Of a DNA stretch of 64,000 bases, positions 7,855-58,412 are shown piece after piece. Each line of letters starts with the position of its first letter. Position 1 is the first letter of the stretch. Below the pieces are notes generated by a model. It ran no database searches. It had not been told where the DNA came from and saw only the letters and a list, made by a program, of their open reading frames with translations. The position numbers and the translations under genes were made by a program. This DNA is from Rhodosorus marinus CCMP1338. Lineage: Eukaryota; Plantae; Rhodophyta. The stretch covers positions 1,736,001 to 1,800,000 of the forward strand of contig JAMWBK010000007.1 of assembly GCA_029953675.1 (NCBI GenBank). The letters run 5' to 3'.

Positions 7855-8315
7855 AAATTGAGTTGTCCCTATTTTTGAGGTTGTATGGACCTGAAGCGTT
7901 TTGTGGCTTTCTAATGTCATTTTTATCGGCGATTGCTTGAGGAAGAAGAGATGTCGAGAAGGGATGTGACGGGGAGGGGGAGTTGGGTAGGGAGAGCTTG
8001 GAGAGCTGCCTTGGTGTTCTGCGTTGTGTGGGAACTGGATTTTTTGTATTAGTAACTGCTCAGCTGTTAGTTTCGCTGGTGGACTGCTTTTGCAGTTTTG
8101 CTTTGATGAGGTTCGGCTTTGGGTTGTTGCAGCCCCTAGCAGTGCATTTCTGTAATTGAGGAAGTTGACTTGAAGCTGTTTGCGGTTCTCAGCATTTGGT
8201 CGTCGAGCTCTGGATGTTCTGCGTTGCGTTGAAGTAAGGAAAAGATTGAAAGCGGCTGAAATGTGTTATGTATAAATGAACCTGGTTGAGAGGAGAGCCT
8301 GGGAATAAGTTGACG

Positions 8316-9624
8316 ATGGTAGGGAGGATAGAAACTCTCCGAACGGGGAGCGGGAAGCCTTCTGTGCCTACAAGCATTAGGGGCGATGTTGGATTTCTTT
8401 TGAGTAACCCTGGTTTTCATCCGAAAAAATCTGGACGGTTATCCGTATCCAGGCGACTTATCAAAAGATGCGTTCAGCAGATGCCGAAGACCAAAGAAGC
8501 TGAGGAGGTCGAGGTTGCGCCCTTGGGTGAGCCGCAGAGAGCGAAAAGTGAGAATGGCGGGGGCTTGAAGGGTATTGGCAGAACGATTCCTGTCCTGTTG
8601 TTGAACGCGGTGACAGTGTTGTGGGGTTCACAACACGCTGTTATCAAATACGCCGTTGATTTTGATCACCTCTCACCGGACGTGCTTAACCTTGACCGGT
8701 TTTTGCTTGCAGCCATTGTCTTAACCCCATTCCTTCAGAGCTCCGGTTCCTCATGGGCCGGGTCTAGATCTCAGAGAAGGAATAGGGAAAGGAAAGGATT
8801 CGACTTAGGGGCCTTCCTGGCTGGTGGTGAACTGGGACTTTGGATGTTCGCCGGATATTCATTGCAGTCCCTTGGACTGCTAACCACGACTGCTGGGAAA
8901 AGCGCATTTTTATTATATCTCAACGTGAAAATAGTTCCCATACTATCGGCAACGCTTTACAGACGAAAGATACCGTGGAGTACATGGGGTTCAGCAGCGT
9001 TGGCGGTGCTGGGTACGAGCTTACTCTGCTTCGACGGCGGGTCCGCGCCGACCTCGGGCGATATTCTCTCCATCGGAGCAGCTTTCTGTTCAGCCATGTT
9101 TATCCTCCGACTGAGCACCGCAGCGAAGGAGTACAATACCGCAGAATTGAGCGTCTACAGCTTGTGGACCACAGTGATCCTATGCGGATCGTGGGTTGCT
9201 TTCAGTGAGCAGCCCAAGTCACTGCAGGCACTTATTCCCTCCGCCGCAGACGCTCCCGCGATCTTGTATCTGGGACTTGTAACCACCGCCTTAACCACAA
9301 TACTACAGACATTTGGACAGAGATATGTCAAGGCCGAGAAGGTAACCACGGCAATGTCTTTCACAAGCGAATGCCTTGCGTTGAGCTCCCTCTGAAAATT
9401 CTGCGCTATCTTTTGTGCTGTATTAGGCCGCCTTAATTTATGCGCTTGATCCGGTGTACGCGGCGATCTTTTCCTATGTCTTCCTGAGCGAAAAGCTCGG
9501 AGAGGCAGGAATCGCAGGCGCTTTTCTTCTCACTTTTGCAGCACTAGTTAGCCAAGTAGACACGCTGAAGTATATCAGCAGCTTTTTCTCGAATATGTCC
9601 GGACGGGTTAGGTCCGAGAAGTAG
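8316..9624 (+). CDS. EamA/DMT-superfamily transporter with N-terminal extension (possibly organellar); exons ~8316-9341, 9427-9624
   Basis: About 10 hydrophobic segments, LWGSQHAVIK, YSLQSLGLLTTTAGKSAFL, ALIYALDPVYAAIFSYVFLSE. The start codon is uncertain. Confidence 0.85.
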
Positions 9625-11106: not shown

Positions 11107-13275
11107 CACATTGCGATTGTGACTCTGTAACGTCTCGTGAAGCAGGTTCATCTCTGCAATGAATTTCAGTTCAATAATTCCTTCTCAACAGGAGCATTCA
11201 ATTTTTCTTCATCATACGAATGAACTTTAAGACATTGTATCAAATAAAGCATATAACTTGTCGGACTCTGTTTCATGAATATCTGAAATAAATTTGATAC
11301 CCCGAAAAAGACTAAACGTTGAATTTGGAAGAGGAACGAACTCCCGAGTCGGTGGCTTGGTCGTTCGCAGCTGTTGATCTAGCAAATGTGCACGTCGTCA
11401 ACCGGAGGGTTCATAGTCATTCACAAGGTTTGGTTCTGCAGCCAGCCCCGGAAATCCACCGACATATAGGCCTATAACTCCGGGAAAACCCAAGATTCAC
11501 CCCTAACAGCTTGAACTTCTCGTTCGGCGCAGCGAAATGAGTTGGTGTCATCAAGGACGTCGTAGCGGAATGTTTGCCGGAGTGGAAGATTTTGGAAGAA
11601 TATCGCGTTGCCGAACGAGAGTACCTCACTAGGGGAGCTTGGCCTCCGATTAAACCGATCTGTCGTTAGTTCGCAGGGATAGGGAGGTAGTACTCTATGC
11701 TATTCTAGCAAGCATCCGAAACGCCGAGTGACTCCCTAGCCCGAATACACCCTGACCACAGGGTCAAGTCGCCTGGGTGTAATGTCTGGTGCGAGATCTG
11801 ACACCATGCGGGGTTCGCTGTGGTGGAGGGACCCACTTGCCCAAGATATTCTTTGAAGCTACTTCCACGACTCATACCGATATGGTAGGTTCAAATGCGT
11901 GATCGGCGACCAGCGATCGCTCTGTACATACGCCAAAGACATCGTTCCCCCGAAGTTTCATTTCCAATGCCACTACTTAACCTTGTACATCGCGTACATT
12001 TTATAGAAGGTCACCCCCACCACGAAACCGTTCTAAATTTATTTCTAAAATCTCGCAAAAATTCCCAAACAATCTGTTTCCAAAAACCAATTAAGAATAC
12101 TATTCCAACCCCTCTCTACTAAAATTAACGAAAACAGAAACACTTATATTATATTGAAATATTTTATCGAAGTACTCATCAAGGAAAAGGAGACTAAATT
12201 TAATTACAATGTATTATACACGAATAAGGGAAGTCGCAACTTTGAGATATTATTTGATTTTTCAAAATAAATATAAGCAAATACTCCTTATCGTTTTTTA
12301 CAAATTTTGATGAGGAGAGTATCCGATAAAGTGGAGATTGACGGAATACTTCCTTCGCCAATAATTTTTTTTTCAGATTGATTGTTTTGGATCGCGTGAT
12401 ACGTCAAGCCCTGAGGTGTGATGATGGTGGCGGATTATGGTTTTAATTAGTTGAAAAGCGCACAGCCTGTCCCTTTCTTGGTTGGTTCCGTTGTTGTCAG
12501 TTTAGGTTACGATTCGTTTACTCTGGTCAAACAGACTGGGAATGAGAGTGTGATCAAGGTTAAGAATAGATAGAGAGATCTTCTTCGTTTTGCAATTAGT
12601 ATTGTCTCACTCGAATTTTTCCGGACCGTTTGGGTGGGTGGGGGTGAGTAGAGGCCGCCCCGCCGAATGGTTTTGAGACCCTTTCCCCGTCACCCCGCGC
12701 CAGGCCCCTGGACGACTCGAGAGCTTGAGCGTTGTTGGTTTTTTTGAGCTCCAGAGACATGGAATCAAGAGAAAAGCTCTCTTTGAGTCAGAGAGCGCAT
12801 TTCGATTCGTTTGGTGAGGTCATTGAATCGAAATAGCCCATCTGTCCAACACACCCATCTCTGGTCGTGATTCCAGTTTTCGAGTTTTAATAGAGTCATG
12901 AAGTAGATGAAGAAAAGGAAAGGGTTTCAAGATGTTTCAACGCAGCGAACGGTATTGTAAACAAATCAGCTGATTCTTGTCTGTATACAATTGATTTGGG
13001 CCCTGCTAGCCTGTGAATATATGCCCTCCAAGTCGTTCCGTATTTCGAAGATCTCGACACTGCGGTTCGGCGTCTCCGTGGAGAACCGTAAATTGGGTTG
13101 TTAGGGATAGCGTCACCAGAGGGCAGTGATCCAGATGGAACTGGATGGTATTTCTTCTGGAGGGAAGTAGGTTATAAACTGAGTGCCTGAGCCTTGTTCC
13201 TAGAGCGCAGGGGAGAACGAGAAGCAGGATTGAACCGCTTTGAAGCAGTGGACAGTGCATTGTTAAGAATTAGCT

Positions 13276-15133
13276 ATGGACGAGGTTGTGAAGGCAGCTG
13301 CGGGAGTATCTGGTACAGAAACGGCCCGGTTTAAGGTGTTAAACGACAAGGAGCCAAGGACTACTGGAGAATATGTGCTGTGGTGGCCTACGGAGTGCCC
13401 TAGAGTTCAGTGGAATGACACCTACGAATTGGCAAAGTCGATTGCGGTGCAAGCGGATCTGCCCATAATCTGCCTCTACGCGATCGACCTTGCGTTCTAC
13501 TCTATGGGGTCGATACGCCACATCAACTTCCTCCTGGAAGGCCTGGTGGAGCTGAAAAAGTCGGTCGAGTCCTCGAACCAGTCGAGGCTATTCCTGCGTT
13601 TCGAGCCTGTAGGCTCGGGAGCTGCGCTGAGCGTCGTCGGGTCTGAGGACCTTTCCTTTAGTGGATTCGGCGAAAAGGCCTATGCGGTCGTCACTGACGC
13701 CGTTTACATGCCGCGCTCTTCAAAAATCCTCGCTTCAGCAGCCGAAAATCTAGGTATCGATCCCTTCTAGATCCAGTATTTTCTCCTCAATTCACGAGTT
13801 CCAGGACTGATTCGTTCCTTGTTTCTAATTCAACACAGACTGTCCGCTAGTTTCCGTGGAGAGCTCTGTGGTCATTCCGATTAGAAAAATCACCACAGAT
13901 GGTCAAGTTCCAGATCAGAGCGCTTTTCTCGAAAGTTGGATGGATATTTGCACAGATTTTGTGAAGCCTAGAAAGTCCGTGAAACTAACGAGGAGGTAAA
14001 CCATGGGAAATAAATCTGTTGCTTCTCGTTTCGTTGCAGCTGCTAAACCGGAAAGTGCCCTTCCTCCTCTCGAAATGAACCGTTAACCCAGTGTTCCGTC
14101 GTCGATGGAGAAGCTGGATTGCGGTTGTGTCTTTGGATCTAGGGACAGGGAATGGTATCCTGGAGATTGGCTTCAGGAATCGGATAGGCTTAAGGAGGTT
14201 CTCAACGAGAATGGTGTCGATTCTGAAGTTTCCGCTGTCACCAGCGCGTACAGAGGTGGTGAATCTGGTGGTCGAAAGCTGCTAGGCATCTTCGTTACGA
14301 GGAAGCTGGACGCGTATGGCTACGCTTCAGAGAATTATGGCGAAACGAAGCGAGGAGAGTATGGATCTCTTTTATCGCCGTATCTCAACTTTGGATTCAT
14401 GTCTCCAAGCGAAGTGATCTCGAGATCGATGGAGTCTGGTGCAAAAGGACACAGTCTTGATACTTTCCTCGAGAAGCTCGCGCTTCGTGACTTTGCCTAT
14501 GTTCGAAGCGCCCTGGAACCGAACTACGGATCATACGAGGCAATCAAGGAGTCGGAAAGGGACGCGATCGAGCAGATCAAGGCCAAGGACGAAGACAGAA
14601 CTTACCCTGACGAGGAGTGGGCGCATGCACAGACTCATGACAACGTATGGAACGGAATACAGCGGGAGCTACTGCTGAGGGGAAGGAATATATTGAACGA
14701 CAGAAACATATGGTGTTACAAGATCATTGACATAGAAAAGTCTTCCAGAAATGCCTTTAGGTTGGCCAGAAAGTTGAACGACAAATATATGCTCGATGCC
14801 ATAGGGCCAGTCGGCATCTTCGCTCTGGTAGGCCTGTCCGCTCCTAGCCATCAACCAGGGTCCGAAACGCTTGTTGCTGAGAAAACTATTCTCTTGTTTG
14901 TTTCTAATGGATCTCACCCACTCCAGCTGGGGTGCTTTGAATCGTACGCAGGCTATCGCATGAGTATCGTAGGAGGAGGGGAGGGGTAACTTCTGCACCT
15001 GTCGAGGCCTTGGTTACCTATACGAAGCACGCTCTCGGCTCTCTGACTCTGTCCATCCCAGCTCAGTTTCTATTCTGCGACGGTGGTACCCGAAATTTTT
15101 GATCTGGTCGAGCGTAAAGCAGAGTACTTCTGA
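13276..15133 (+). CDS. Highly divergent class II CPD-photolyase homologue; exons 13276-13753, 13839-13995, 14092-14827, 14927-14985, 15067-15133; ~498 aa
   Basis: N-terminal YVLWW..PRVQWN..INFLLEGLVEL; C-terminal LSPYLNFG, THDNVWNGIQRELL, RNIWCYKI and LNDKYMLD align colinearly with class II photolyases. Confidence 0.8.
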
Positions 15134-15884
15134 TTTTGCTAGAACCAGCAGCTCAAGTCCGATGAGCTTCTTGTAGAGGGATTGGTGAGCTTCTTTCTTA
15201 TTTATCTCTGATCCCGTTTGAAATTCGACGTAATCGTCACGGCATAGATCCGCGATGAAGTGTAGCTGGCCGGACGAGAGCTCGAGCGCTGAACTCTATC
15301 CAGTAGAGCTTGCTTGGTACATGGACAGGGAGCTTGTAGGTGAAGCTGATGCTCTCTTTTGAGATGTACTGCCAGTGAACTCGACGGCTTAGCTATCCTA
15401 ATGTCACAGGTGTTGCCGAATGACAGATCTAGGCCTAGGCTCGTTGACCTGGCTCCCCTCTCATGAGATGGTGAAAGGTCTGCATTGACTGAGTGGAGCA
15501 GCTTTGAGTTTTTTCAATGTTTATGAGGTTAACTAAAATCAAGTTTCATGGTAGTTAATCGTCGATCGCGAATCAGGGGCTGCACCCTCAAGATAGGAAA
15601 AGCCATTGACAGACTCTCCATTAGCTGGATTAGCGTTTTGGTTCCCTAGATGCCGTGCCAGATCCTATTCCACTTGTCCAAGAGTGAGTTATGTTCTAGG
15701 TGGGACCTGTTGGGCCTGGAGAGGGCATCAAGTCGATTTCGAGGTGCGTACTTAGGTTTCGTGGTATTCCGAAAACTGCATTTGGCGTACGGGGTTTGAA
15801 TCACTGTGAATAGTCGTGTGTTGCTGACGATCCCTGAAAACAGCTCGTGATGAGAAGAGCTGATGCTTTGGAGGGAGGTTGAGC

Positions 15885-16671
15885 ATGGAATGGGACGCTC
15901 CGATAACGGTCTGGGAGGAACATTTGAAGGCGTATTCGCACGCGATTAAGGTGAGGGGTGAGAGCACTGCGTCGAGATCTGAGCTTTCCAAGTTGGACCA
16001 TGAGGTGAGAAATTTTGGAGATGCTGCGAGGAGACGAGATCCAGAATCGATCACCAGGATCGAGCTGTCGAAGATCGTCTCTTGGAAGTTGAAGAGGGGA
16101 AAATTTAGGCCGAGGTTACAGAAGCTCGCGGACTCGAATACGGAAAAGGCGGTTACGGACACCTCATCCAGGGCGTTCAGCTATGTGAAAAAGGGGGACC
16201 TGACGAAGGCGCTGAAGGCCTTGGAAGAACTCTCCGGTATAGGTCCAGCGACAGCATCCGCGGTTTTATCAATTGTTTGCCCATCCCGGTGCGCGTTCAT
16301 GTCCGATGAAGCCCTGGCTGCAGCCCCCGCCCTCAATGGACGAGTTGACTACACGAACAAAGCCTTCAAGCTGTTTCAAGAAGACATGATTAGCAAGTCC
16401 AGGCAGCTGGAGGAGTTGAGTCCCCACAAACAGGTAGGAATTTTGCTAAAATCTAACCATCTAATCCCTCCGCGCGGGACATCGCTTGCCTGCAAGCGGG
16501 GGGGTAACGTGCTTGGGCTGGGGGACTCAACCATATGGAAACTTGTTTTTAACTTAGAAATGGACACCAGTTATGGTTGAGAATGCGATATGGTCCTCTA
16601 TCACTCGAAAGCAGCTCGACAACACGGAAAATCTGGGCTCAAAACCGAAACGAAGGAAGGTAGGAAAATAG
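15885..16671 (+). CDS. Amun-like helix-hairpin-helix DNA-glycosylase-fold protein; exons 15885-16433, 16558-16671; 220 aa
   Basis: ELSKIVSWKLKRGKFRPRLQKL, HhH motif LSGIGPATASAVLS, FMSDEA, WTPVMVENAIW, and a basic NLS-like tail KPKRRK. Confidence 0.72.
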
Positions 16672-16704
16672 ACTATTCTGCCGCAGAATGATGCAACAGC
16701 AACT

Positions 16705-17246
16705 CTACTTTGTGTGGGAGACCTTGGGAAGGTCGAAATGTTCAGGCTCTGCCGCAAGCTTCTTGTTAAATCCCTGTGTATGATTAAACAACAGACGATT
16801 CGTTTGGTTTTCTTCAGAACCAAGTGCATACGCAACACTAACGATCAACCCTCTTATCCAGCAAGGGCTTTGGAATTTACAAGTCACCTCTACTTGATCT
16901 CGATAAGTCATTTTCGCAGCCTTTTCAATCCTAGCTCGTTCCCTCTCCTCTTGAACCCTCGCAAACCTCTTTTCAGCTTCGGTTCGTGTGTCTCTCGTCG
17001 TTTCCAAGCTCGACACAATCGCAGGCTCCTCCTCTGCAAGCCTAAGCAAACCGAAACCACAGACGTCGAGTCAGACCCCCCCTCACAAAACACAACAAGA
17101 CCCCACACACTCCAAAAAAACCAAAAATCCACTTGGCTCACTTACTTCTCCACCTTGGAGCTCTTCTTCTTTCCCTTAGACTTCTTCTTCTTCTTCACCC
17201 CCTTCAACTTCAGAGCCCCCCGCTGAACGCTTTCATACTCAGACAT
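16705..17246 (-). CDS. FAM32A: FAM32A (DUF1754) family protein; exons 17246-17146, 17041-16888, 16773-16705; 107 aa
   Basis: MSEYESVQRGALKLKG at the N-terminus and RTEAEKRF..EHFDLPKVSHTK at the C-terminus. Confidence 0.88.
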
Positions 17247-17431
17247 CCTCTTTCTCCCTTTTCCAAATCAACAACAGCTTTCCCAACCAAACGCTAACGC
17301 TAAGCAAACTAGTCCTCCCTCAACTTCAAACTCTACCAACCCAACCCGTCGTCCCCTCTAGAAACTGCTTTGTTCCCTTCAAAGCACTAGCACTCTAACC
17401 CAATCAAACAATCCCCCCCATCTCACCCCTC

Positions 17432-18338: not shown

Positions 18339-20048
18339 ATGATTCGAGTTGCTGTGGGAGGTTCTGGAGGACGTTGGACCGCGCTGAGATCAGGAACACT
18401 GAATCAGAGGCGAGGTCTGAGCCAAGGAAGGATACGGTTTGCGTCCTTGGGCAGAGCGTCCGGGGAAATACGTCGGTTTACTCCTTATCTTTCTGGAACG
18501 GCCGCTAGGGTTGTGTTTGGGACAGTTGGACTGCATTTCTGTCTGTCTTTCCTGGATCAGTCGTCGGTTACGTATTGTGAAGCCGAGAAGGAACCACTCG
18601 GATCTGATGAGGAATGGAATCGACTGCATGATATGCTCGAGGATGTGCGAAAGAGTACGAACGGTACATTTGAGGCCACGACGGTGAGAAGTGAGGACTC
18701 TGCTCTGGTGAGATTCAAGGTGCAGGATCATGTGGACCTGTTCGAGCTACTGGTCTGCGTGCTCAGCTCTCTCGATGAGAACGAGCTCCGCGCGGTGAAC
18801 TTGGATGGGGGTGAGGGCGCTAAAAATCTTTCCATTCATGCAGACGACGGATTGAGTTCTTCTTCGGTCCGCGTTTGGTCCGATAACGTACATATTTCGC
18901 TCTTCCAGCCCCAGGTGGGACCTTTTCATGCGGAACTCACCTTCGAGAGGTTTAACCAGTTCTTCACCCCGCAGGAGATGGACGGGATTGTGGAGGCCTA
19001 TCAACTGTCCCAGTTGGGACAGAATACCTCTGGGACAGACGGTTACGGAGCGTCCACGCGGAAGCCAGAGCGCAGTATGGAGGGACCGAAAAGTGCGCAG
19101 GAGTTTGCAAGAGTCGAGCGCGAGCTGGCCGAGTTCGGAGCATCTGTACATCAAACTGATCGAAAGCTCCAGTGGAGTGATCTCGCAGGTTACGATGAGA
19201 TCAAGCGGCTGATAGACGATACGCTGATCTATGCGTTAACATACCCTGAGGTCTATGATAGAATCACGAAGGCGACCCGAGAGAGGTTCCAGACTAGCCG
19301 TCCAAGGGCGGTGCTGTTCGAAGGGCCACCAGGCTGTGGTAAAACCACAAGCGCGAAGATTTTGGCATCCCAGGCTGGCGTTCCGTTTGTACATATTCCT
19401 GTCGAAGGCGTCATGAGCAGATGGTATGGAGAGTCTGAGCGAAACCTATCGAAAATGCTCTCGACGACCAGTGAAATGGGCCCCGCGTTGGTGTTTGTGG
19501 ATGAGGTTGATGCGTTGGGAACCTCGCGAGACAAGGAGATACACGAAGCGTCAAGGAAGATGCTCTCTGTTCTTCTGAGGCACATCGATGGTATGGACGG
19601 ACAGCAGTCTTCCATACTCGTCGCGGCAACAAACCGTAAATCGGATCTAGATGCGGCGCTGCTGTCCCGCTTTGATATAGTTATCCGGTAGGTTGCAAAG
19701 CTACCGCTGCAGCTGCGGCTCGTCTGTTGATAGACAGGACTGTGTCGCTGACTCATTTTCCGCTGTCTGTTTTTCTATCTGCCTAGGTTCGATCTCCCAG
19801 ACGAGAGTACTCGAAGAGCAATGTTTGCACTCTATGCAAAGCAATTGGATGAGGAGGAGCTGTCGATGCTCGCCGTGCGGTCAGAAAAGTTGTCGGGGCG
19901 CGATGTGTTGGACATCTGCAAAGAAGCCGAAAGGGCCTGCGCCGGACGATGCATCAGGGAGAACAGGACAGACACATTGGATCTCCCCGTCGCGAACGAC
20001 TATCTCCAAGCTCTTGAACAGTTTTCAAAGTCTGCAGAGTACGCCTAG
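18339..20048 (+). CDS. Single-AAA-domain ATPase with probable mitochondrial presequence; exons 18339-19687, 19787-20048; 536 aa
   Basis: Walker A GPPGCGKT, Walker B VFVDEVD, SRH ATNRKSDLDAALLSRFD; Arg/Gly/Ser-rich N-terminus. Confidence 0.88.
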
Positions 20049-21157: not shown

Positions 21158-22708
21158 TCAAAATTGTTCCTTACAGCTCCAGTATTTCCAAGTCTTGTCG
21201 TAGCAAGCGGTGACAATATGCTCAGCGCTACCGCCGATATCTCCGCAAGTTACCTGTAGGGGCAGGGCCAGGGCAGGTCAGGTCAAAATAGGAAATGTTT
21301 AGAAGCCAAGCATTGCGGGAGCAAACTCCAGACGACCTCGGGAAACAAGCCTTACCTTTTCTTCATGGTTTGACAAAACACCAACTAGGACGTAACCCCT
21401 TCTGCTCCAGACCTTTGCGGTTTTGTCAAAAGAAGTGGAGAGGAGAACGTGACCGCTTCCGGGTTGATATTTCACGGACGTTACGCAGGAGGAATGCGCG
21501 GCGATTGTATAGAAGCAGCGCCGTTTTCTCAAGTCCCAAATTTTGATCGAGTTGTCGTTGGATCCAGTGGCAAGTTGGTACCCGTCAGGAGAGAAATCTG
21601 CGCCCAGAACGCTATCAACATGACCAGTGAATGTCATGATACACCTTCCTGATCGATTGTCCCAAACTCTTACGGCTCGGTCCAGTCCACATGATGCAGT
21701 TAGCGAGCCGTCTTGATGAAAGGCGATCCGATAGATGGGTTTGGAGTGTCCCTCCTGAAGAAGAAGGCAGGTACCGGTTTCAAGGTCGTACAGTCGCCAT
21801 GTCGTGTCGAAGCTGGAAGATCCAAGGAGCTCTCCGTTTGGGTGAAAGGCAACTCCTGAAACGCGATCGGCGTGGTCGCGGTAGACGGCAGTGATACGGT
21901 CCTTCTCCTCCCTTTTTGTGTCCCACAGATGAACAGTTTTATCCGCAGAACAGCTCGCGATGACGTCCGGTTTGGACGGATGGAAAGCGAGATGCGAGAC
22001 GCGCTCTGTGTGTCCCTTCAGAACGAGCGGAAGGGCGCCCGAGTTGGCGTCCCAGAGCTTGACGAGACCTGACCAAGAGCCAGTAGCGATGGTTGATGGA
22101 TCCTGCGCTCCAGAGGAGAACGCGCAAGCGGCGAGTGGTCGGGAATCTCCGATCTGGGACGATACAAGCGCAACGTTTTGCATTGATGCGTAGATTTCGT
22201 TGCCTTCCTCTCGGAATTCGACGCTTCGGAGCCGCTTTCGAGATTCTACAAGTCTGTCCCTTGAGTTGTGAAGGGATTTCTTCAGGATCTTAAGGCGCGC
22301 CTGTTTCAGCTCCTCCAGGCCCTCAGTGAAGAACTCCTCCGGCGCTGGCTCGTTCTTGTTTTCCTCCTCCTTCGCGTCCTTCTGCTCATCGGAGGGTTTG
22401 TTCTCCTTTTCCTCCAAAACCAGGGCTCGAAGACGTTCTCTTCGATCGTGCGCATCTTCTCCGAATAGACAAACTGGCTCTCCACGGTTCCTCAGCTCCG
22501 ATCGAACGTCGGTATCGGCAGTCGGCAAAACAAGCGCACGAGCTTCTCTCTGTTTGTCCAACACTCCCTCTCGATGTTCCTGCTCTTTCCTGGCATCCTC
22601 AGCCGCGTTATCAAAAAACACGCTCTCAACCTGTCCATTTTCGCCTACCCCATTCTCCTCACCAGATTCAGATCCAGAACCCTCCTCCATTTTTGTAACA
22701 GCTGCCAT
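21158..22708 (-). CDS. PRP4: U4/U6 snRNP protein Prp4 (SFM domain + WD40); exons 22708-21356, 21253-21158; 482 aa
   Basis: PRP4/SFM motif DVRSELRNRGEPVCLFGEDAHDRRERLR followed by seven WD40 repeats. Confidence 0.93.
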
Positions 22709-23724
22709 TCTAAGCAATCCAAAATCGTTCTAAAAGCAACCAAAAATTCCCAACTGTTCACCTCGAAACAATCAATTCCAGTCCTTCAAGCTCCATCATC
22801 CTCTTCACACAAGCAAAAAACCGCTCTCTAAATCCACCACGACGATCCAGTCCGTTCCCAAAACTCCTCTCTTGACCAAAGCCACCTGCATAACCCAGAA
22901 GAGGATGCTCGTTCCTATCGATAGTCTATATAAACCAGCTCCTTCCTTCTCACGCCCGCCCCGCTTGCTATCAAGCCGATGCCGCCTTGTCCTTAGCAGC
23001 GCATCGACAAAGCTGCTGATTGTTGAATAACTTGTTGTTGAACACTGCTGTACTTCCAATCGCTTGGTACGTAACAAGGTCTTGAACGACGAAAAGTTCC
23101 TTCCGTTCGATGTGCTTAGTTCTCTTATGTAGCCGATGTCCTTGTAATATGGATCCTGCCGCTTTGCTCGTCAACGAATAGTCTGGCAATATTCCCAATA
23201 GGTTGAATGATCTCCTCCAGTAGATGCTTTAGCCAGATTATTCGTTGAACATTCTTTTCGTTCAAGATCTTGTGGAAGTACAAGAAGTCACTGATCCGTC
23301 TTCTAAAACCAAACCTCAGCCTCTGACTGACGATCATCGACGTGACCCAATCCAGAAGGCCTCCTCATCGATGACCGGAACCTGCAATTCCCACAAAGCG
23401 ATCTCAGGGGTTTCAAAGGACTAGAAGAAGGTAAAGTTGTACCCAAAGTCTATGCACAATGTTTTGAAACCTTCTTCTACAAGCTCCAGGTTTCAACTCT
23501 ATCGCTAAGCGTAAACAAGGCGATCACTGGATCCCTCCCCTCCCCCCCCGTCCCTGAAAAGAGTGAAACGATAGGAAGGTCTCACTCAGTGATGTCTGGA
23601 ACCGGCTTCCAGAGCCTGGTCAAAGTTTCAAGAGGAAGACAGGAGTGTGAAAAGCACTCGACAAAAAGAGACGAACAAACTGGAAGTTCGGATCCTCTCC
23701 ACTCGTAGAGGACGACAAAGCCGA

Positions 23725-53297: not shown

Positions 53298-56200
53298 TTA
53301 TTCGATCTTGAGCATCTTCTTGAGCTTGATCACGCATATCCAATCTTCTTTGGCGAGGTCGTCCCTGAAATGCTCACGGAGCAGGTCGATGGAGTGCCTG
53401 CTCATCTTGCTCACGATTTCGCTGGTGTGGTCAAAGTGCCTTCCGTACATTACGTTGACGGTACCTGGGCTCTGGATCTTAATAGCAACTGATTCTCCCT
53501 TGTGGGCGGTATTCACCGCCTTCTTGTTCAGCTCAATCGACTGGACAGTACCGATATCAATCCATTCGTCGTCCTTCACCTTCGCCAGCAAGGGAGTGTT
53601 ATTCTTCAAAAAGCCCTCAAGAACCTGAACAAACGAACTCTGGTATTCAGATTCTCAAATAGAGCAAGGAAGCCGCCCACCTTGCTAGGGTCCATACCTC
53701 CACGCCAACAACGATGGGGTCCTTCTTGTTGAACACAAAATGGGGAAAGATCTTTAGCCTGCACGGAAACACGACGTCCACAGACGCAGCCTCACGCCTA
53801 GATTTCTTGATTCCTTCCATGTAGGCGGTGAATTGGTCGAAAAGATGATAGATAATATCCGCTGTGAAAATGCGCACGCCTACTTCCTGTGCATAGTCTC
53901 GCGCGTCGCTTTCCACTTTGACGTCGAAAGCCATAATGCATGCGTATTCCCGCTTCTTCTCCAGCATGGTTGAGCACCTAACCACGTCCTTCCTGTACAC
54001 TGGTCCAATGTTTATGCCTGAAACCGGAATCTAGTCGAAGGTTGAACACAAAAGCCCAGCGAAGGTCAACAATCTTTGGGCGGCCTGAAACAAGCTAAAG
54101 GAGGAAAACAGACACTTAGCAAACTCACATTCGACGTCCGCAAGAACTCTAAGAGGGCCTCTAAGGATCCGAGTGTTGATGCCTGTACATATACACCAAC
54201 GCCGCTGCGGTCCACCGATCGAAGAATTCCCGAAAAGTCCTTCATGACCTCTTCCTTGAGGAATTCTATCTCATCTGCGGTACCCTCCTCAGCAACGAGG
54301 AGTTGAGTACCTGCCACTGACTTTTCGAGACCCTCTCCAGCAATCTTTACACCCTGTGCAGCAAAGATTTCCTTATGATGAAGGTACTGGCCCTTGACTC
54401 GAAGTTCACGCATCGGGTGCGGTGTCAGGAGGGCACGAACAGTGGTCACAATCGGTGCATCCAGACCACAGACGACAATCGTATCTCCTTCCTTCAGCTT
54501 GCCGCCCGTCAGCACAACGTCAATCGTCGTTCCAAAGCCCTCAATAACCTTCACTTCGAGGACAGTACACTCAAGCACATCCGAATATATCAACCTGTTC
54601 GGAGTGACGACGGGTAGGTTACGTGCTTAGTAAAAGCTCTACATTGGGTGGGAGGAGCATTTCCTCGGCGCACCTCTCCTTCAACAGACTCTGAGACAGA
54701 TTAACCAGCATCATCAGCAGGTCCGGAATTCCCTCGCCGCTGATTGCTGAAGTGGGAACAAAAGAGATGTACGACCTCGGGTCGGGGTTCTCCCAGTACA
54801 ATGCAGCGTTAAAGCCCTGTTCTGCGAAAAGCACTTTCGTGTCGTCAAGGCGCCGGTGGAACTCCTCGACGACAAAGTCGGGCTGCTTCTTCAGGGAATC
54901 TCTCGTTGGTGTATTCGTGCAAGGTACCCAGCCGTACATTCGATCCACCTGGAACACAATTGAAAAAGGCGCAAGCTGCCCGGCTCAGCACGTGGTTCGG
55001 GGTTAGATTCTCCTCGCGGGGCACCACCAACCTTGTTGAGCGCCACAATGAACGGTGTCTTTCGCTGTCTCAGAAGTTGAATGCTCTCCAACGTCTGCGG
55101 TTCGAGACCGTGCATGATATCCACGACCAGAATTGCTAAATCACAAAGGCCGGAGCCTCGGGAGCGCAGGTTCGTGAAAGACTCATGCCCAGGAGTATCA
55201 ATAATAAGAAGTGCCGGTAGCCTGTACTGCATCTTGACCTCTTTCACCTTGCTCACTTCCTTTCTTACAGCTTCCATGGGGAAGAATGTTGCTCCTATTT
55301 GCTGGGTAATACCTCCGGCTTCCCCGTTCTGACACATTCCCGAAACATAGCAGCAGAGTGGAGAAAAAGTTCAAAAGACAAGCCCTTCAACGTGAGCAGA
55401 TCTTTGACAGCATCGTTGTTTACCTGCACATTTGTCCTTCTGATTTTGTCCAGAATTTTTGTCTTTCCGGTGTCTACGTGCCCAAGGATACAAATGATTG
55501 GGGAACGCAGCCTCTCCGGATCTCGCTTTGCCAACAGTTCCCGCTGACGCTGCAACCTGCGCTTCTTCGCCACTAAGAGCTTCTTGTTCGCTTCAGCCCT
55601 ATGCGGAGCGAGACACAGTGCATTTGAACGTGTTAAAAATATGAGATAAAGGCACCTCGAAATGAACGCAAACAATACGGGACTGACCCCGATCAGCCGC
55701 GCTTCTTCTTTGGTTCCATACCGTCGCTTTCTGGCTGCTGGGTCATCATCATCGGAATCAGAATACTCCTCGTCAGAGTCAGAGTAATCGTCGTCATCCT
55801 CCTCGCTACCCTCCTCTTCGTCATCCTCGTCTTCAGCCTCCTCCTCCTCCTCACTGTTCGGCTCTGCCTCTGCTCGATGAGCTTCGCTTCCGTTTACAAG
55901 AGCATCCTTGGTCTCTGCAGTCTCATCGTTAACCTCCGATGGTTGCTTGGAGCTCTCCTCCGCTTCCAACGAGTCCTCCCAGGTCACCGCAACAGGTTCG
56001 GCGGTTTCCAACGCGTCCTCCCATGTTTCAGCGACGGGATCGCTTTGCTCAGTTGCTTCCTTCGGTGGCTCTATGTTTGGTGATCTGTCTTGTGTTGCAA
56101 TCTTCACGTCGCGACTCGCCTGCGGTATGGGTTCTTCTTTGGTGATTTCCTTTGTCGCCGATTCCGCCACTGGGCTAGCTACCTTACTCTTGTTGCTCTG

Positions 56201-58165
56201 TTTCTGCTGTCGCCGCTTCTTGCTGTCATATACCACCTTTTTCTTTTTTCCGTCGGTTGAAGTCTCCGAGGCGGCGGCAGCGGGTATCTAAAACCGCGAG
56301 AGAACAAGCGTGAGGTTGTGAACTCAAAATGTATATGACCGTACCCAGCAAATCTCTGGTTCATGTAACTGGCAATCTCGACATGCATCTTGTTCCGCCC
56401 CAACTGGGCTTGAGCGTAATTCGTATTTCTTACCATGCCTGAAGCTATTAGCTGCTCTCTGTACTGGTCTGCCTTCTTCTTACGTTCTAGTTCCTTTTTG
56501 GACAAAAGCAATCCTTGCTTTCTCAACTCCTCCTTCTTTAGCCGCTGTTTTTCTCTCTGCTCCTGTCTCTTTTGCCCCTTAACCTGTGCCTCCTCTTCCT
56601 CCCTGCGCAGCTGTTCTTCTAGATCACGTTGCTATAGGGGTGCGGGTTCGGGGCGTGAAACGGCTTCTGTTAGTAACTTGTGGTGCTTCAGGAATCACGG
56701 TGTGGCGGTACCACTATGAACCACAATTTAAAAATACCTTTTCCGCCGCTTCTTGTTCGGCTCTCTCCTGCTCCATGCGCTGCTTCTCCACGGCCTCTTT
56801 CATACGCTTGACTGCAGCCGACTCCTTCTTGCCCATCTTTCCAGGCGCCGCTGCCGGTTCTTTAGCAGTTTCTACCTTTTTCACCTTTGCTCGCTCTTTC
56901 TTCTTGAGCTTCTTCTTTTGCGCTGCAGTAAGTTTGACTTCCTTCTCGGGCTCGTCTTCTTCTCCCTCCCCTTGGATAGCACTCTGAGCAGCATCCGATG
57001 GCACGTCCTTTGTCTCTTCGGTTACAACATCCTTGCGAACATCCGGAGCTGCAGCTACCTCTGCGCCGGCATCGGCAACGGGGGTCTCTGACTCAGGCTT
57101 TGAATCATAGACACTGGTACTAGTAATCACTACTTCTTTTGCTCCCTCAATCTCGGCCATTAGAGCCTCAATTTCCTCCTCTTCCTTGGCCTTTTTCTTC
57201 TTCTTCTTGTCCTTCTTGCTCTTAGAAGCCGAGGGCTTGGGAACTGCCTCGAGCTCGGCCAGGATGGCGTCAATGTCTTCCTCCTTTTGTTTTTTGTCGT
57301 CCTTGCGTTTCTGGGCTTCAATGGCCGCCTTCCCTCTCGCACGAGAGACGTCATTCATTTCAGCATCCTCCGTGGTAACCGAGCTAGTTGCTGCCGCTGG
57401 CTTCTTGCTGGCAGCCTTGCCCTTCTTCTTGTTTGCAGCCGCGGCTGGTACTACGGGAGCATCCACAACGGGTTTCACGGCTTTTTTCACTGGCGCTGTC
57501 GCTTTGGCCTTCGCAGCAATCGCTCCGGGAATAATCGGCGCGTCATCATCGGAGTCATCATCAGATTCGTCTGCGACCTGTAGACCCGCGAAACCGGCGC
57601 CTTTCTTGACACCAAAATCAACGACCGGTGCTTCATCATCGTCCGAATCGTCATCGTCTTCGTCATCATCAATAGTCAGCCCAGCAAAGCCAGCGCCTCC
57701 TCCTTGGGTCTGAGCCTTGCCTTTCTTGATCCCAAAGTCAACTATGGCGACGTCATCATCATCAGACGACTCCTCGTCATCTTCATCATCAACTGCGAGC
57801 CCTGCAAACCCGGAACCGGCTTTCTTCGCCCCGAACTCAACAGCGGGAGCTCCGTCATCAGACTCTTCATCATCGTCATCATCCAGATCCGCGAGAGCCG
57901 CAAAGCTTCCTCCTTTCCCACCGTCGCCTAAGGCACCCGCCGTAGCCCCCTCGTCCTCATCGTCTTCCTCAAACTCGAACGCCACCGCAGACTTCTTCGC
58001 CTTCTTCTTCGCTGACTTCTTCGACGCCATCCCAATCACAACCGGATCCTCCTCAAACTCACCCTCTTCGCCCAACCCCTTCCCAACCCCACCCAAATCA
58101 TCATCATGAGGATCCTCCTCAACCTTCGAAGCCTTCTTCCCCTTACCAGCTTTCTTCTTACCCAT
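53298..58165 (-). CDS. EIF5B: Eukaryotic translation initiation factor 5B (multi-exon)
   Basis: [68 protein letters not shown]; long K/E/D-rich N-terminus. Confidence 0.95.
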
Positions 58166-58412
58166 ACTTTCCAAAAACCAAAAGAACTCTACGAAGCACT
58201 TCAGCACTTCCACAGAAGCAAATCGTCCCAAACTCAGCTAACAATCCCCTCATCAGCACATCTCCCACACACCTCCCGACCGTCTCCCCATAACTCCACT
58301 CATAAATATCCTTCCCGAGTCTGAAACATTAGAGGCAGTCATCCCTCAAGAAAGAAAACTCCATGAAAAATGGAAAAAACCACATTTCCTCCCACCGGGC
58401 CAAGCTTCCCAC

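Follow-up and report, generated by a model that had tools for sequence, protein, structure and literature searches.

A diverged class II photolyase homologue in Rhodosorus marinus belongs to a red-algal clade of candidate non-repair, cryptochrome-like flavoproteins

Does a class II photolyase homologue that has kept the residues of its flavin pocket and lost those that hold the DNA lesion still act in repair? The question is raised by a gene at positions 13276–14989 of a 64,000-nucleotide (nt) stretch of the red alga Rhodosorus marinus CCMP1338 (GenBank assembly GCA_029953675.1, contig JAMWBK010000007.1, positions 1,736,001 to 1,800,000; this whole stretch is called the window here). The original prediction, made from the letters alone, had proposed that the gene encodes a non-repair derivative of class II cyclobutane pyrimidine dimer (CPD) photolyase, in parallel to the origin of cryptochromes. 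Every part of this proposal that can be tested on sequence held in the present analysis, and from it we infer binding of flavin adenine dinucleotide (FAD) and a photoreceptor role. We consider it somewhat better than an even chance (a probability of about 0.55) that the window gene is a member of an ancient red-algal clade that arose from class II CPD photolyase and now functions as a non-repair, cryptochrome-like flavoprotein.

The gene had been taken for one intact, full-length open reading frame (ORF) of about 498 amino acids (aa) ending at 15133. It is not one ORF: a plain ORF scan splits the interval in two (13276–13770 and 14105–14989), and three-frame translation with inspection of the splice sites gave four exons separated by GT-AG introns of 85, 96 and 99 nt. 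The spliced product has 477 aa and is identical to a GenBank entry (P0076, KAJ8903592.1, "hypothetical protein NDN08_004696 [Rhodosorus marinus]") from a 2.2-Mb contig, which identifies the window as nuclear DNA of a red alga. Intron 3 mimics coding sequence in the plain scan because it is in frame and free of stops. A fifth exon up to the stop at 15133, through acceptors at 15062 or 15067, was ruled out, since GGGEG followed by the stop codon forms the end of the annotated protein and of the orthologous transcript alike. The gene is laid out as follows, residues introduced by "at" or by an equals sign being those of the Methanosarcina mazei enzyme.

13276–13753, + strand: exon 1, with the ATG at 13276; codes for aa 1–159 plus one base, most of the N-terminal alpha/beta (antenna) domain
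13754–13838, + strand: intron 1, 85 nt, GT...AG; removed in the Rhodosorus MMETSP transcript L004, which joins 13753 to 13839
13839–13995, + strand: exon 2, with L190 (13928–13930) at the lesion-phosphate contact R164
13996–14091, + strand: intron 2, 96 nt, GT...AG; unspliced in some isoforms of the sister strain, the retained form having in-frame stops
14092–14827, + strand: exon 3, coding for the FAD-binding helical domain
14327–14332, + strand: in exon 3, S291/E292 at R256/N257
14366–14380, + strand: in exon 3, SLLSP, the FAD phosphate motif
14474–14476, + strand: in exon 3, K340 at E301
14648–14650, + strand: in exon 3, W398 = W360
14702–14713, + strand: in exon 3, R416-N417-I418-W419 = R378-M379-Y380-W381
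14732–14734, + strand: in exon 3, I426 at W388
14777–14779, + strand: in exon 3, N441 = N403
14795–14815, + strand: in exon 3, D447-AIGPVG at D409-GRDPNG
14828–14926, + strand: intron 3, 99 nt; removed in L004 and missing from P0076 and from the orthologue P0001
14927–14989, + strand: exon 4, with G459 (14930–14932) at W421; stop TAA at 14987–14989
14990–15133, + strand: 3' untranslated sequence, beyond the stop of the annotated protein and of the orthologous transcript; L004 runs through it

The protein thus modelled terminates where the bubble-intruding region of class II enzymes would start. Its sole Pfam domain is the N-terminal PF00875 (aa 35–184). The absence of a match to Pfam FAD_binding_7 says little, as most canonical class II sequences have none either.

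That a class II photolyase homologue lies at this locus was borne out by three lines of evidence. A phmmer search of the sequences in the PDB returned class II CPD photolyases only (M. mazei 2xry with an E-value of about 1e-23, rice 3umv with 2e-15). The sole NCBIfam match was the class II model TIGR00591, over model positions 5–412 of 453; the score was 146.8 bits and so did not reach the family cut-off of 550, and the canonical class II protein of the same genome (P0280) scored 527.7. An AlphaFold2 model computed from an alignment of 71 sequences (pLDDT 92.1, pTM 0.93) matched the M. mazei and rice class II structures first in Foldseek, with TM scores of 0.75–0.78 and E-values of 1e-24 to 1e-21, against about 0.6 and 1e-13 for other classes of the cryptochrome/photolyase family (CPF). 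By sequence and by predicted structure, the protein has a class II fold and is closer to class II than to the other CPF classes. It shares the two-domain fold with the characterized class II enzymes and their canonical relative (M. mazei MmCPDII, PDB 2XRY/5ZCW; rice OsCPDII, 3UMV; NDN08_001415 of Rhodosorus) at a TM score of about 0.77, whereas it is merely 21–25% identical to them.

Residues were compared on a reference covering M. mazei residues 7–461, which was rebuilt from the HMMER alignment and whose numbering was verified on 19 landmark residues. The first alignment held 67 canonical class II sequences, the second, a residue table, set 20 clade units (described below) against 29 canonical sequences, and the third used 188 canonical sequences. 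FAD contacts were assigned from conservation and from what is generally known of the CPF, not from a published contact table. In the M. mazei enzyme the CPD is contacted by W421, W305, M379, N257, E301, R164 and R256, and the residues D428, R429, W431 and R441 intrude into the bubble (PMC6126647). The state of these and of the flavin-side residues in the window protein is given below.

R164 to L190: lesion contact, lost; R164 is invariant in 67 of 67 canonical sequences
R256 to S291: lesion contact, lost
N257 to E292: lesion contact, lost
E301 to K340: lesion contact, lost
M379 to N417: lesion contact, lost
W421 to G459: lesion contact, lost
W388 to I426: distal Trp of the electron-transfer chain, lost
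G410-R411-D412-P413-N414-G415 to A-I-G-P-V-G (448–453): flavin-side loop, rewritten
D428, R429, W431 and R441: absent, the protein ending earlier
S265, S268 and P269: kept; FAD phosphate motif (S304, S307; SLLSPYLNFG at 304–313)
Y345, H356, W360 and N361: kept (Y383, H394, W398, N399); Y383 is the accessory Tyr of electron transfer
R378 and D409: kept; salt bridge (R416/D447)
W381: kept; proximal Trp (W419)
N403: kept; Asn at flavin N5 (N441)

Like class II CPD photolyases, then, the window protein has S-x-L-S-P-Y-L, the R378-D409 salt bridge, H356, W360, W381, Y345 and the class II-specific Asn403 at flavin N5. In contrast to them it has R164, R256, N257, E301, M379, W421 and the distal W388 all replaced and the GRDPNG loop rewritten, and it is acidic and lacks both the bubble-intruding region and the basic C-terminus, including the KIRYM...KRKF region. 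The residues that had been called retained (LSPYLxFG, the R-D salt bridge, the N5 Asn, H356, W360, W381, Y345) are indeed so in the alignments, and the same is true of the changes E301 to K, M379 to N, W421 to G, W388 to I and GRDPNG to AIGPVG and of the loss of KIRYM..KRKF; the replacements at R164, R256 and N257 and the absence of D428/R429/W431/R441 had not been noticed. One supposed diagnostic change has to be withdrawn. The loss of W305 is uninformative because most canonical enzymes carry Arg at this position: 48 of the 67 canonical sequences of the first alignment do, and so do the canonical Rhodosorus (P0280) and Porphyridium enzymes in the second, while the window protein has L343/R344 there. 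Trp305 of M. mazei is itself atypical at this lesion-contact position among canonical class II enzymes.

The substitutions R164L, R256S, N257E, E301K, M379N and W421G dismantle the lesion pocket, and the chain is too short to include the Asp-Arg-Trp...Arg "bolt" by which the unpaired DNA bubble is held open. The loss of lesion and DNA contacts leads us to predict that it carries out no DNA repair, and the alignments support the view that it would no longer bind or repair CPD lesions in duplex DNA. By the same alignments its FAD-binding residues (S304, S307, R416, D447, N441, H394, W398, N399) are retained.

This pattern is not confined to Rhodosorus. An exhaustive search of 1.84 billion representative proteins with a HMMER profile of four sequences parted a small group (283–3580 bits) from the canonical class II proteins (at most 245 bits). 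So far the group consists of red algae only, with at least four named genera (Cyanidioschyzon, Porphyridium, Rhodosorus and Pyropia). Besides the window protein and its orthologue, its members are these.

Cyanidioschyzon merolae BAM80384.1 / XP_005534991.1, "similar to DNA photolyase", 690 aa; in addition, relatives from hot-spring metagenomes
Porphyridium aerugineum: a giant protein and another with a single unit
Two further MMETSP transcripts
Pyropia vietnamensis MMPV_002535, 666 aa; in addition, a close relative from a Logan assembly

The clade was monophyletic in 200 of 200 neighbour-joining (NJ) bootstraps on 49 sequences; together with a glaucophyte enzyme, the canonical ones of Rhodosorus and Porphyridium formed a group elsewhere in the tree (81%). 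The tree is midpoint-rooted, without an outgroup, so that it does not place the origin of the clade within class II, nor set it before or after the gain of class II by eukaryotes. Clade members are 30–53% identical to each other. Their C-terminal tails vary: about 75 aa in C. merolae, Gly-rich and acidic in Pyropia, present also in Porphyridium, and none in Rhodosorus.

The losses and the retentions both extend through the clade. Among the 188 canonical sequences 81 positions reach an invariance of 93% or more; the clade keeps 40 of these and has lost 28, and 13 are intermediate. This comparison and the residue table agree. Among those kept are S265, S268, Y345, H356, W360, N361, R378, W381, N403 and D409, plus D412 in most members; those lost include R164, M379, W388, G410, R411, N414, W421, D428, R429, W431 and R441, and also H374, Y376, W328, H336, D339, R341, K383 and K451. 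Every DNA or lesion contact within the 81 positions is lost. Four of the seven published lesion contacts are gone: R164, M379 and W421 clade-wide, E301 in most members. R256 and N257 have likewise been exchanged in the whole clade, and none of the bubble residues D428, R429, W431 and R441 is conserved. The FAD-proximal residues together with W381, W360, Y345 and N403 are kept in 16–17 of the 18 non-degenerate clade units. Within the electron-transfer chain (W381-W360-W388 plus Y345), the window protein has W419, W398 and Y383, with Ile in place of W388, a position mostly occupied by Tyr or Phe in its relatives. A further 24 positions are conserved within the clade and rare in canonical enzymes, some of them flanking the FAD motifs: R299, E301 and G303 (window protein numbering) before SLLSP, D415 beside R416, and M445 and A448 around D447. 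The window protein has an isoelectric point (pI) of 5.1, and 19 of the 20 clade units are acidic as well, against a canonical median pI of 8.7; acidity is weak evidence, since the M. mazei class II enzyme is itself acidic.

Two cysteines were observed in addition. Cys420 directly follows the flavin-proximal Trp419 (window 14711–14716; M. mazei position 382, Gly or Ala canonically) and is found in 13 of 20 clade units. A second lies near the C-terminus, in C460-F461 (window 14933–14938).

The C. merolae protein has the same kept and lost residues as the window protein, to which it is 35% identical, and differs in its low-complexity insert of about 100 aa, its C-terminal extension, the retention of D412 and a Tyr at 388. 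In the Cyanidioschyzon-type orthologue on hot-spring metagenome/SRA contigs (L001/L002:6001-8076), the gene is intron-less, the insert is Ser/Ala/Gly-rich and lies inside the FAD domain, the C-terminal extension has about 75 aa, and the neighbouring genes encode RPS10, a poly(A)-binding protein and citrate synthase. BAM80384.1 does not appear in the list of accessions for PHR1-5 and PHR7. It is possibly "PHR6", the uncharacterised seventh CPF gene of Asimgil & Kavakli 2012.

A different architecture is found in P. aerugineum (MMETSP0313), where hmmsearch detected nine full-length tandem units, joined by linkers of 5–36 aa, in a single protein of 4,593 aa (P0078). Its ORF runs without interruption over 13.8 kb (L007:526-14307) of a 14,454-nt transcript and ends in a low-complexity tail of 156 aa rich in G, M, P, A, Y and Q. 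Because the units are only 28–44% identical to each other, we regard this as an old array and not as an artefact of assembly. The FAD and electron-transfer residues are intact in units 2–8; several of them (Y345, H356, N403) are missing from unit 1, and unit 9 is degenerate. A second protein of 1,898 aa (P0079), from a 5'-truncated transcript, holds four units followed by a G/A/Y/R-rich tail. The final unit of both proteins lacks the FAD residues. To our knowledge no other CPF protein has this tandem architecture.

That the window gene would be a paralogue and that a separate canonical class II gene might exist had both been anticipated. Such a gene, NDN08_001415 [Rhodosorus marinus] (P0280, 508 aa), was found on another contig (3.19 Mb) with the class II sequence of Porphyridium purpureum given in the PMC9498864 supplement as query. 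It has every canonical class II motif, including FLEELIVRRELA and YMRMYWGKKILEW, so the window gene is an extra diverged copy and not the CPD photolyase of the organism. No tandem copy or paralogue was found by tblastn elsewhere in the 64-kb window.

Expression was followed in a second Rhodosorus strain through MMETSP transcript contigs (L004-L006, those of the partial transcript P0081). They align to window positions 12734–17330 with introns 1 and 3 spliced out and intron 2 kept. Excision of the homologous 98-nt GT-AG intron (intron 2) from L004 yields exactly P0001, a complete orthologue of 476 aa encoded by an MMETSP transcript of this second strain, which is 91% identical to the window protein. 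By the method of Nei and Gojobori, the two Rhodosorus coding sequences gave a synonymous divergence (dS) of 0.320, a nonsynonymous divergence (dN) of 0.048 and a ratio (omega) of 0.149 over the whole gene, a value that comes from this one pair of strains. Omega was 0.17 in the N-terminal domain and 0.10 in the FAD domain, which is the more constrained half. Identity was 82% at third positions and 94–95% at first and second positions. The window gene is under purifying selection and is no pseudogene; the objection that it might be one fails on transcription and splicing in the second strain and on this ratio.

If the protein no longer repairs DNA, what would it do? In the reading that we prefer, a non-repair, cryptochrome-like flavoprotein, it would still bind FAD, and blue or UV-A light would reduce the flavin through W419, W398 and then Tyr. 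The resulting redox or conformational change would be passed to partner proteins, instead of splitting a pyrimidine dimer; in clade relatives signalling would probably use the variable C-terminal tails, which Rhodosorus lacks. Several observations weigh against this proposal. The Rhodosorus protein has Gly at D412 and Ile at both W388 and Y380, and in M. mazei the W388F exchange gives a radical-pair yield of about 4% compared with 55% (PMC5885780). Photoreduction in the Rhodosorus protein could be inefficient because W388 and Y380 are lost and D412 is Gly. The flavin-side loop GRDPNG is rewritten, and the protein ends inside the homology region, without the C-terminal extension usual for cryptochrome signalling. 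Mammalian-type cryptochromes are an example that a retained Trp chain is no proof of light dependence.

An alternative is that the clade encodes a light-independent scaffold or regulator, which like mammalian-type cryptochromes would use the photolyase fold as a structural or protein-binding module with flavin dispensable or only structural. The nine units of P. aerugineum in one 4,593-aa ORF with a 156-aa Gly/Met/Pro/Tyr/Gln-rich tail, and the four units with a Gly/Ala/Tyr/Arg tail of the 5'-truncated transcript, make a multivalent layout closer to a scaffold than to a classical receptor; the last unit of both polyproteins lacks the FAD residues, and the distal Trp is not conserved in the clade. 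The retention of the FAD-proximal residues and of W381, W360, Y345 and N403 in nearly all non-degenerate units across at least four named genera would nevertheless be hard to explain if flavin were irrelevant, and constraint is stronger in the FAD domain (omega 0.10) than in the other half, so that we regard a light-independent role as rather unlikely. A light-driven repair enzyme acting on a changed substrate, for example damage in RNA or single-stranded DNA or some non-CPD lesion, would agree with the photolyase fold, with the retained FAD residues and with the presence of N403, an Asn that in class II enzymes stabilises flavin in its reduced form. CRY-DASH, too, was at first counted among the cryptochromes. 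Repair limited to single-stranded DNA is exemplified by CRY-DASH and NewPHL (PMC7736829). Unlike CRY-DASH, the window protein lacks R164, E301, M379 and W421, which make up four of the seven published lesion contacts, and has R256 and N257 replaced. Across the clade, E, D, Q, N, G, T or L stands at position 421, often an acidic residue, and 379 varies too, which argues that no new pocket is conserved; with the basic DNA-binding C-terminus missing and the proteins acidic, repair of another substrate appears improbable. A decaying, functionless duplicate would account for the many lost catalytic residues, the truncated C-terminus and the 146.8 bits reached against a 550-bit cut-off. It is very hard to reconcile with an intact reading frame, conserved splice sites, transcription in a second strain, a dN/dS of 0.149 at a dS of 0.320, orthologues or paralogues retained in at least four named red-algal genera, 24 clade-specific conserved positions and a confident structure model (pLDDT 92.1), and we give it next to no credence.

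A non-repair, cryptochrome-like flavoprotein of this kind would resemble the cryptochromes that arose from class I/III and (6-4) photolyases (plant and animal CRY). There too a duplicate keeps the flavin site and a Trp chain, has lost the lesion-binding residues and coexists with a working photolyase, and most clade members share with them a variable C-terminal tail. The parent class is different, however, as class II has another Trp chain and another Asn at N5; the Rhodosorus protein is tail-less, and we infer a signalling role for the clade. Another comparison is with PPL/PHR2 (Arabidopsis At2g47590, GERALT; reported from red algae as well), a CPF member with a shortened FAD domain, no conserved substrate-recognition residues and a non-repair role (bioRxiv 10.1101/2024.08.16.608208). 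PPL/PHR2 descends from CRY-DASH (PMC4564169, PMC9498864), and the window protein was ruled out as a member, since it has no DASH match, matches class II alone by sequence and has class II as its best match by structure. The "unassigned red-algal branch" of Deppisch 2022 was also rejected as a home for the clade, because the clade motifs were not found in the supplementary sequences of that paper.

Around the gene the window holds the following features.

8286–9395: EamA-type transporter
15879–16580, + strand: helix-hairpin-helix protein (DNA-binding motif Pfam PF00633, E-value 5e-6), directly downstream
18339–19691: AAA ATPase
21299–22717, minus strand: WD40 protein

These neighbouring genes are ordinary, and no synteny with the Cyanidioschyzon-like locus was found. 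The helix-hairpin-helix neighbour is also present on the contigs of the sister strain: L004-L006 extend more than 2 kb beyond the stop codon and across this gene, which could reflect read-through, the joining of overlapping transcripts during assembly, or unspliced RNA. Elsewhere in the window, a 2-kb dip in AT skew (-0.32 at 56001–58000) matches the Lys/Glu/Asp-rich N-terminal region of an eIF5B-like GTPase gene (55295–58231, minus strand).

In the reviews and phylogenies that we searched, class II figures as a repair enzyme only and often serves as the outgroup (PMC7560933). The cryptochromes described there all come from the class I/III, (6-4) or DASH branches. Neither a class II-derived non-repair lineage nor the proteins of this clade, by name or accession, were found in the literature searched, in line with the original prediction that such a case was not known to be described. 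It is tempting, but no more than tentative, to see in the clade the first known cryptochrome-type lineage from class II, dating to the early red algae, and in the nine flavin-binding modules and low-complexity tail of Porphyridium a multi-chromophore light/redox sensor or scaffold of a design unseen in any photoreceptor family. If true, a class II-derived non-repair lineage would be an independent repeat of the transition from photolyase to cryptochrome, and with its different Trp chain and different N5 asparagine it would offer a natural test of what that transition needs. The nine-unit Porphyridium protein is a separate puzzle of protein architecture. Red algae are without phytochromes (PMC10853006), and any extra flavin photoreceptor therefore bears on how they sense light. 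With an orthologue in C. merolae, a genetically tractable alga, the question is directly testable.

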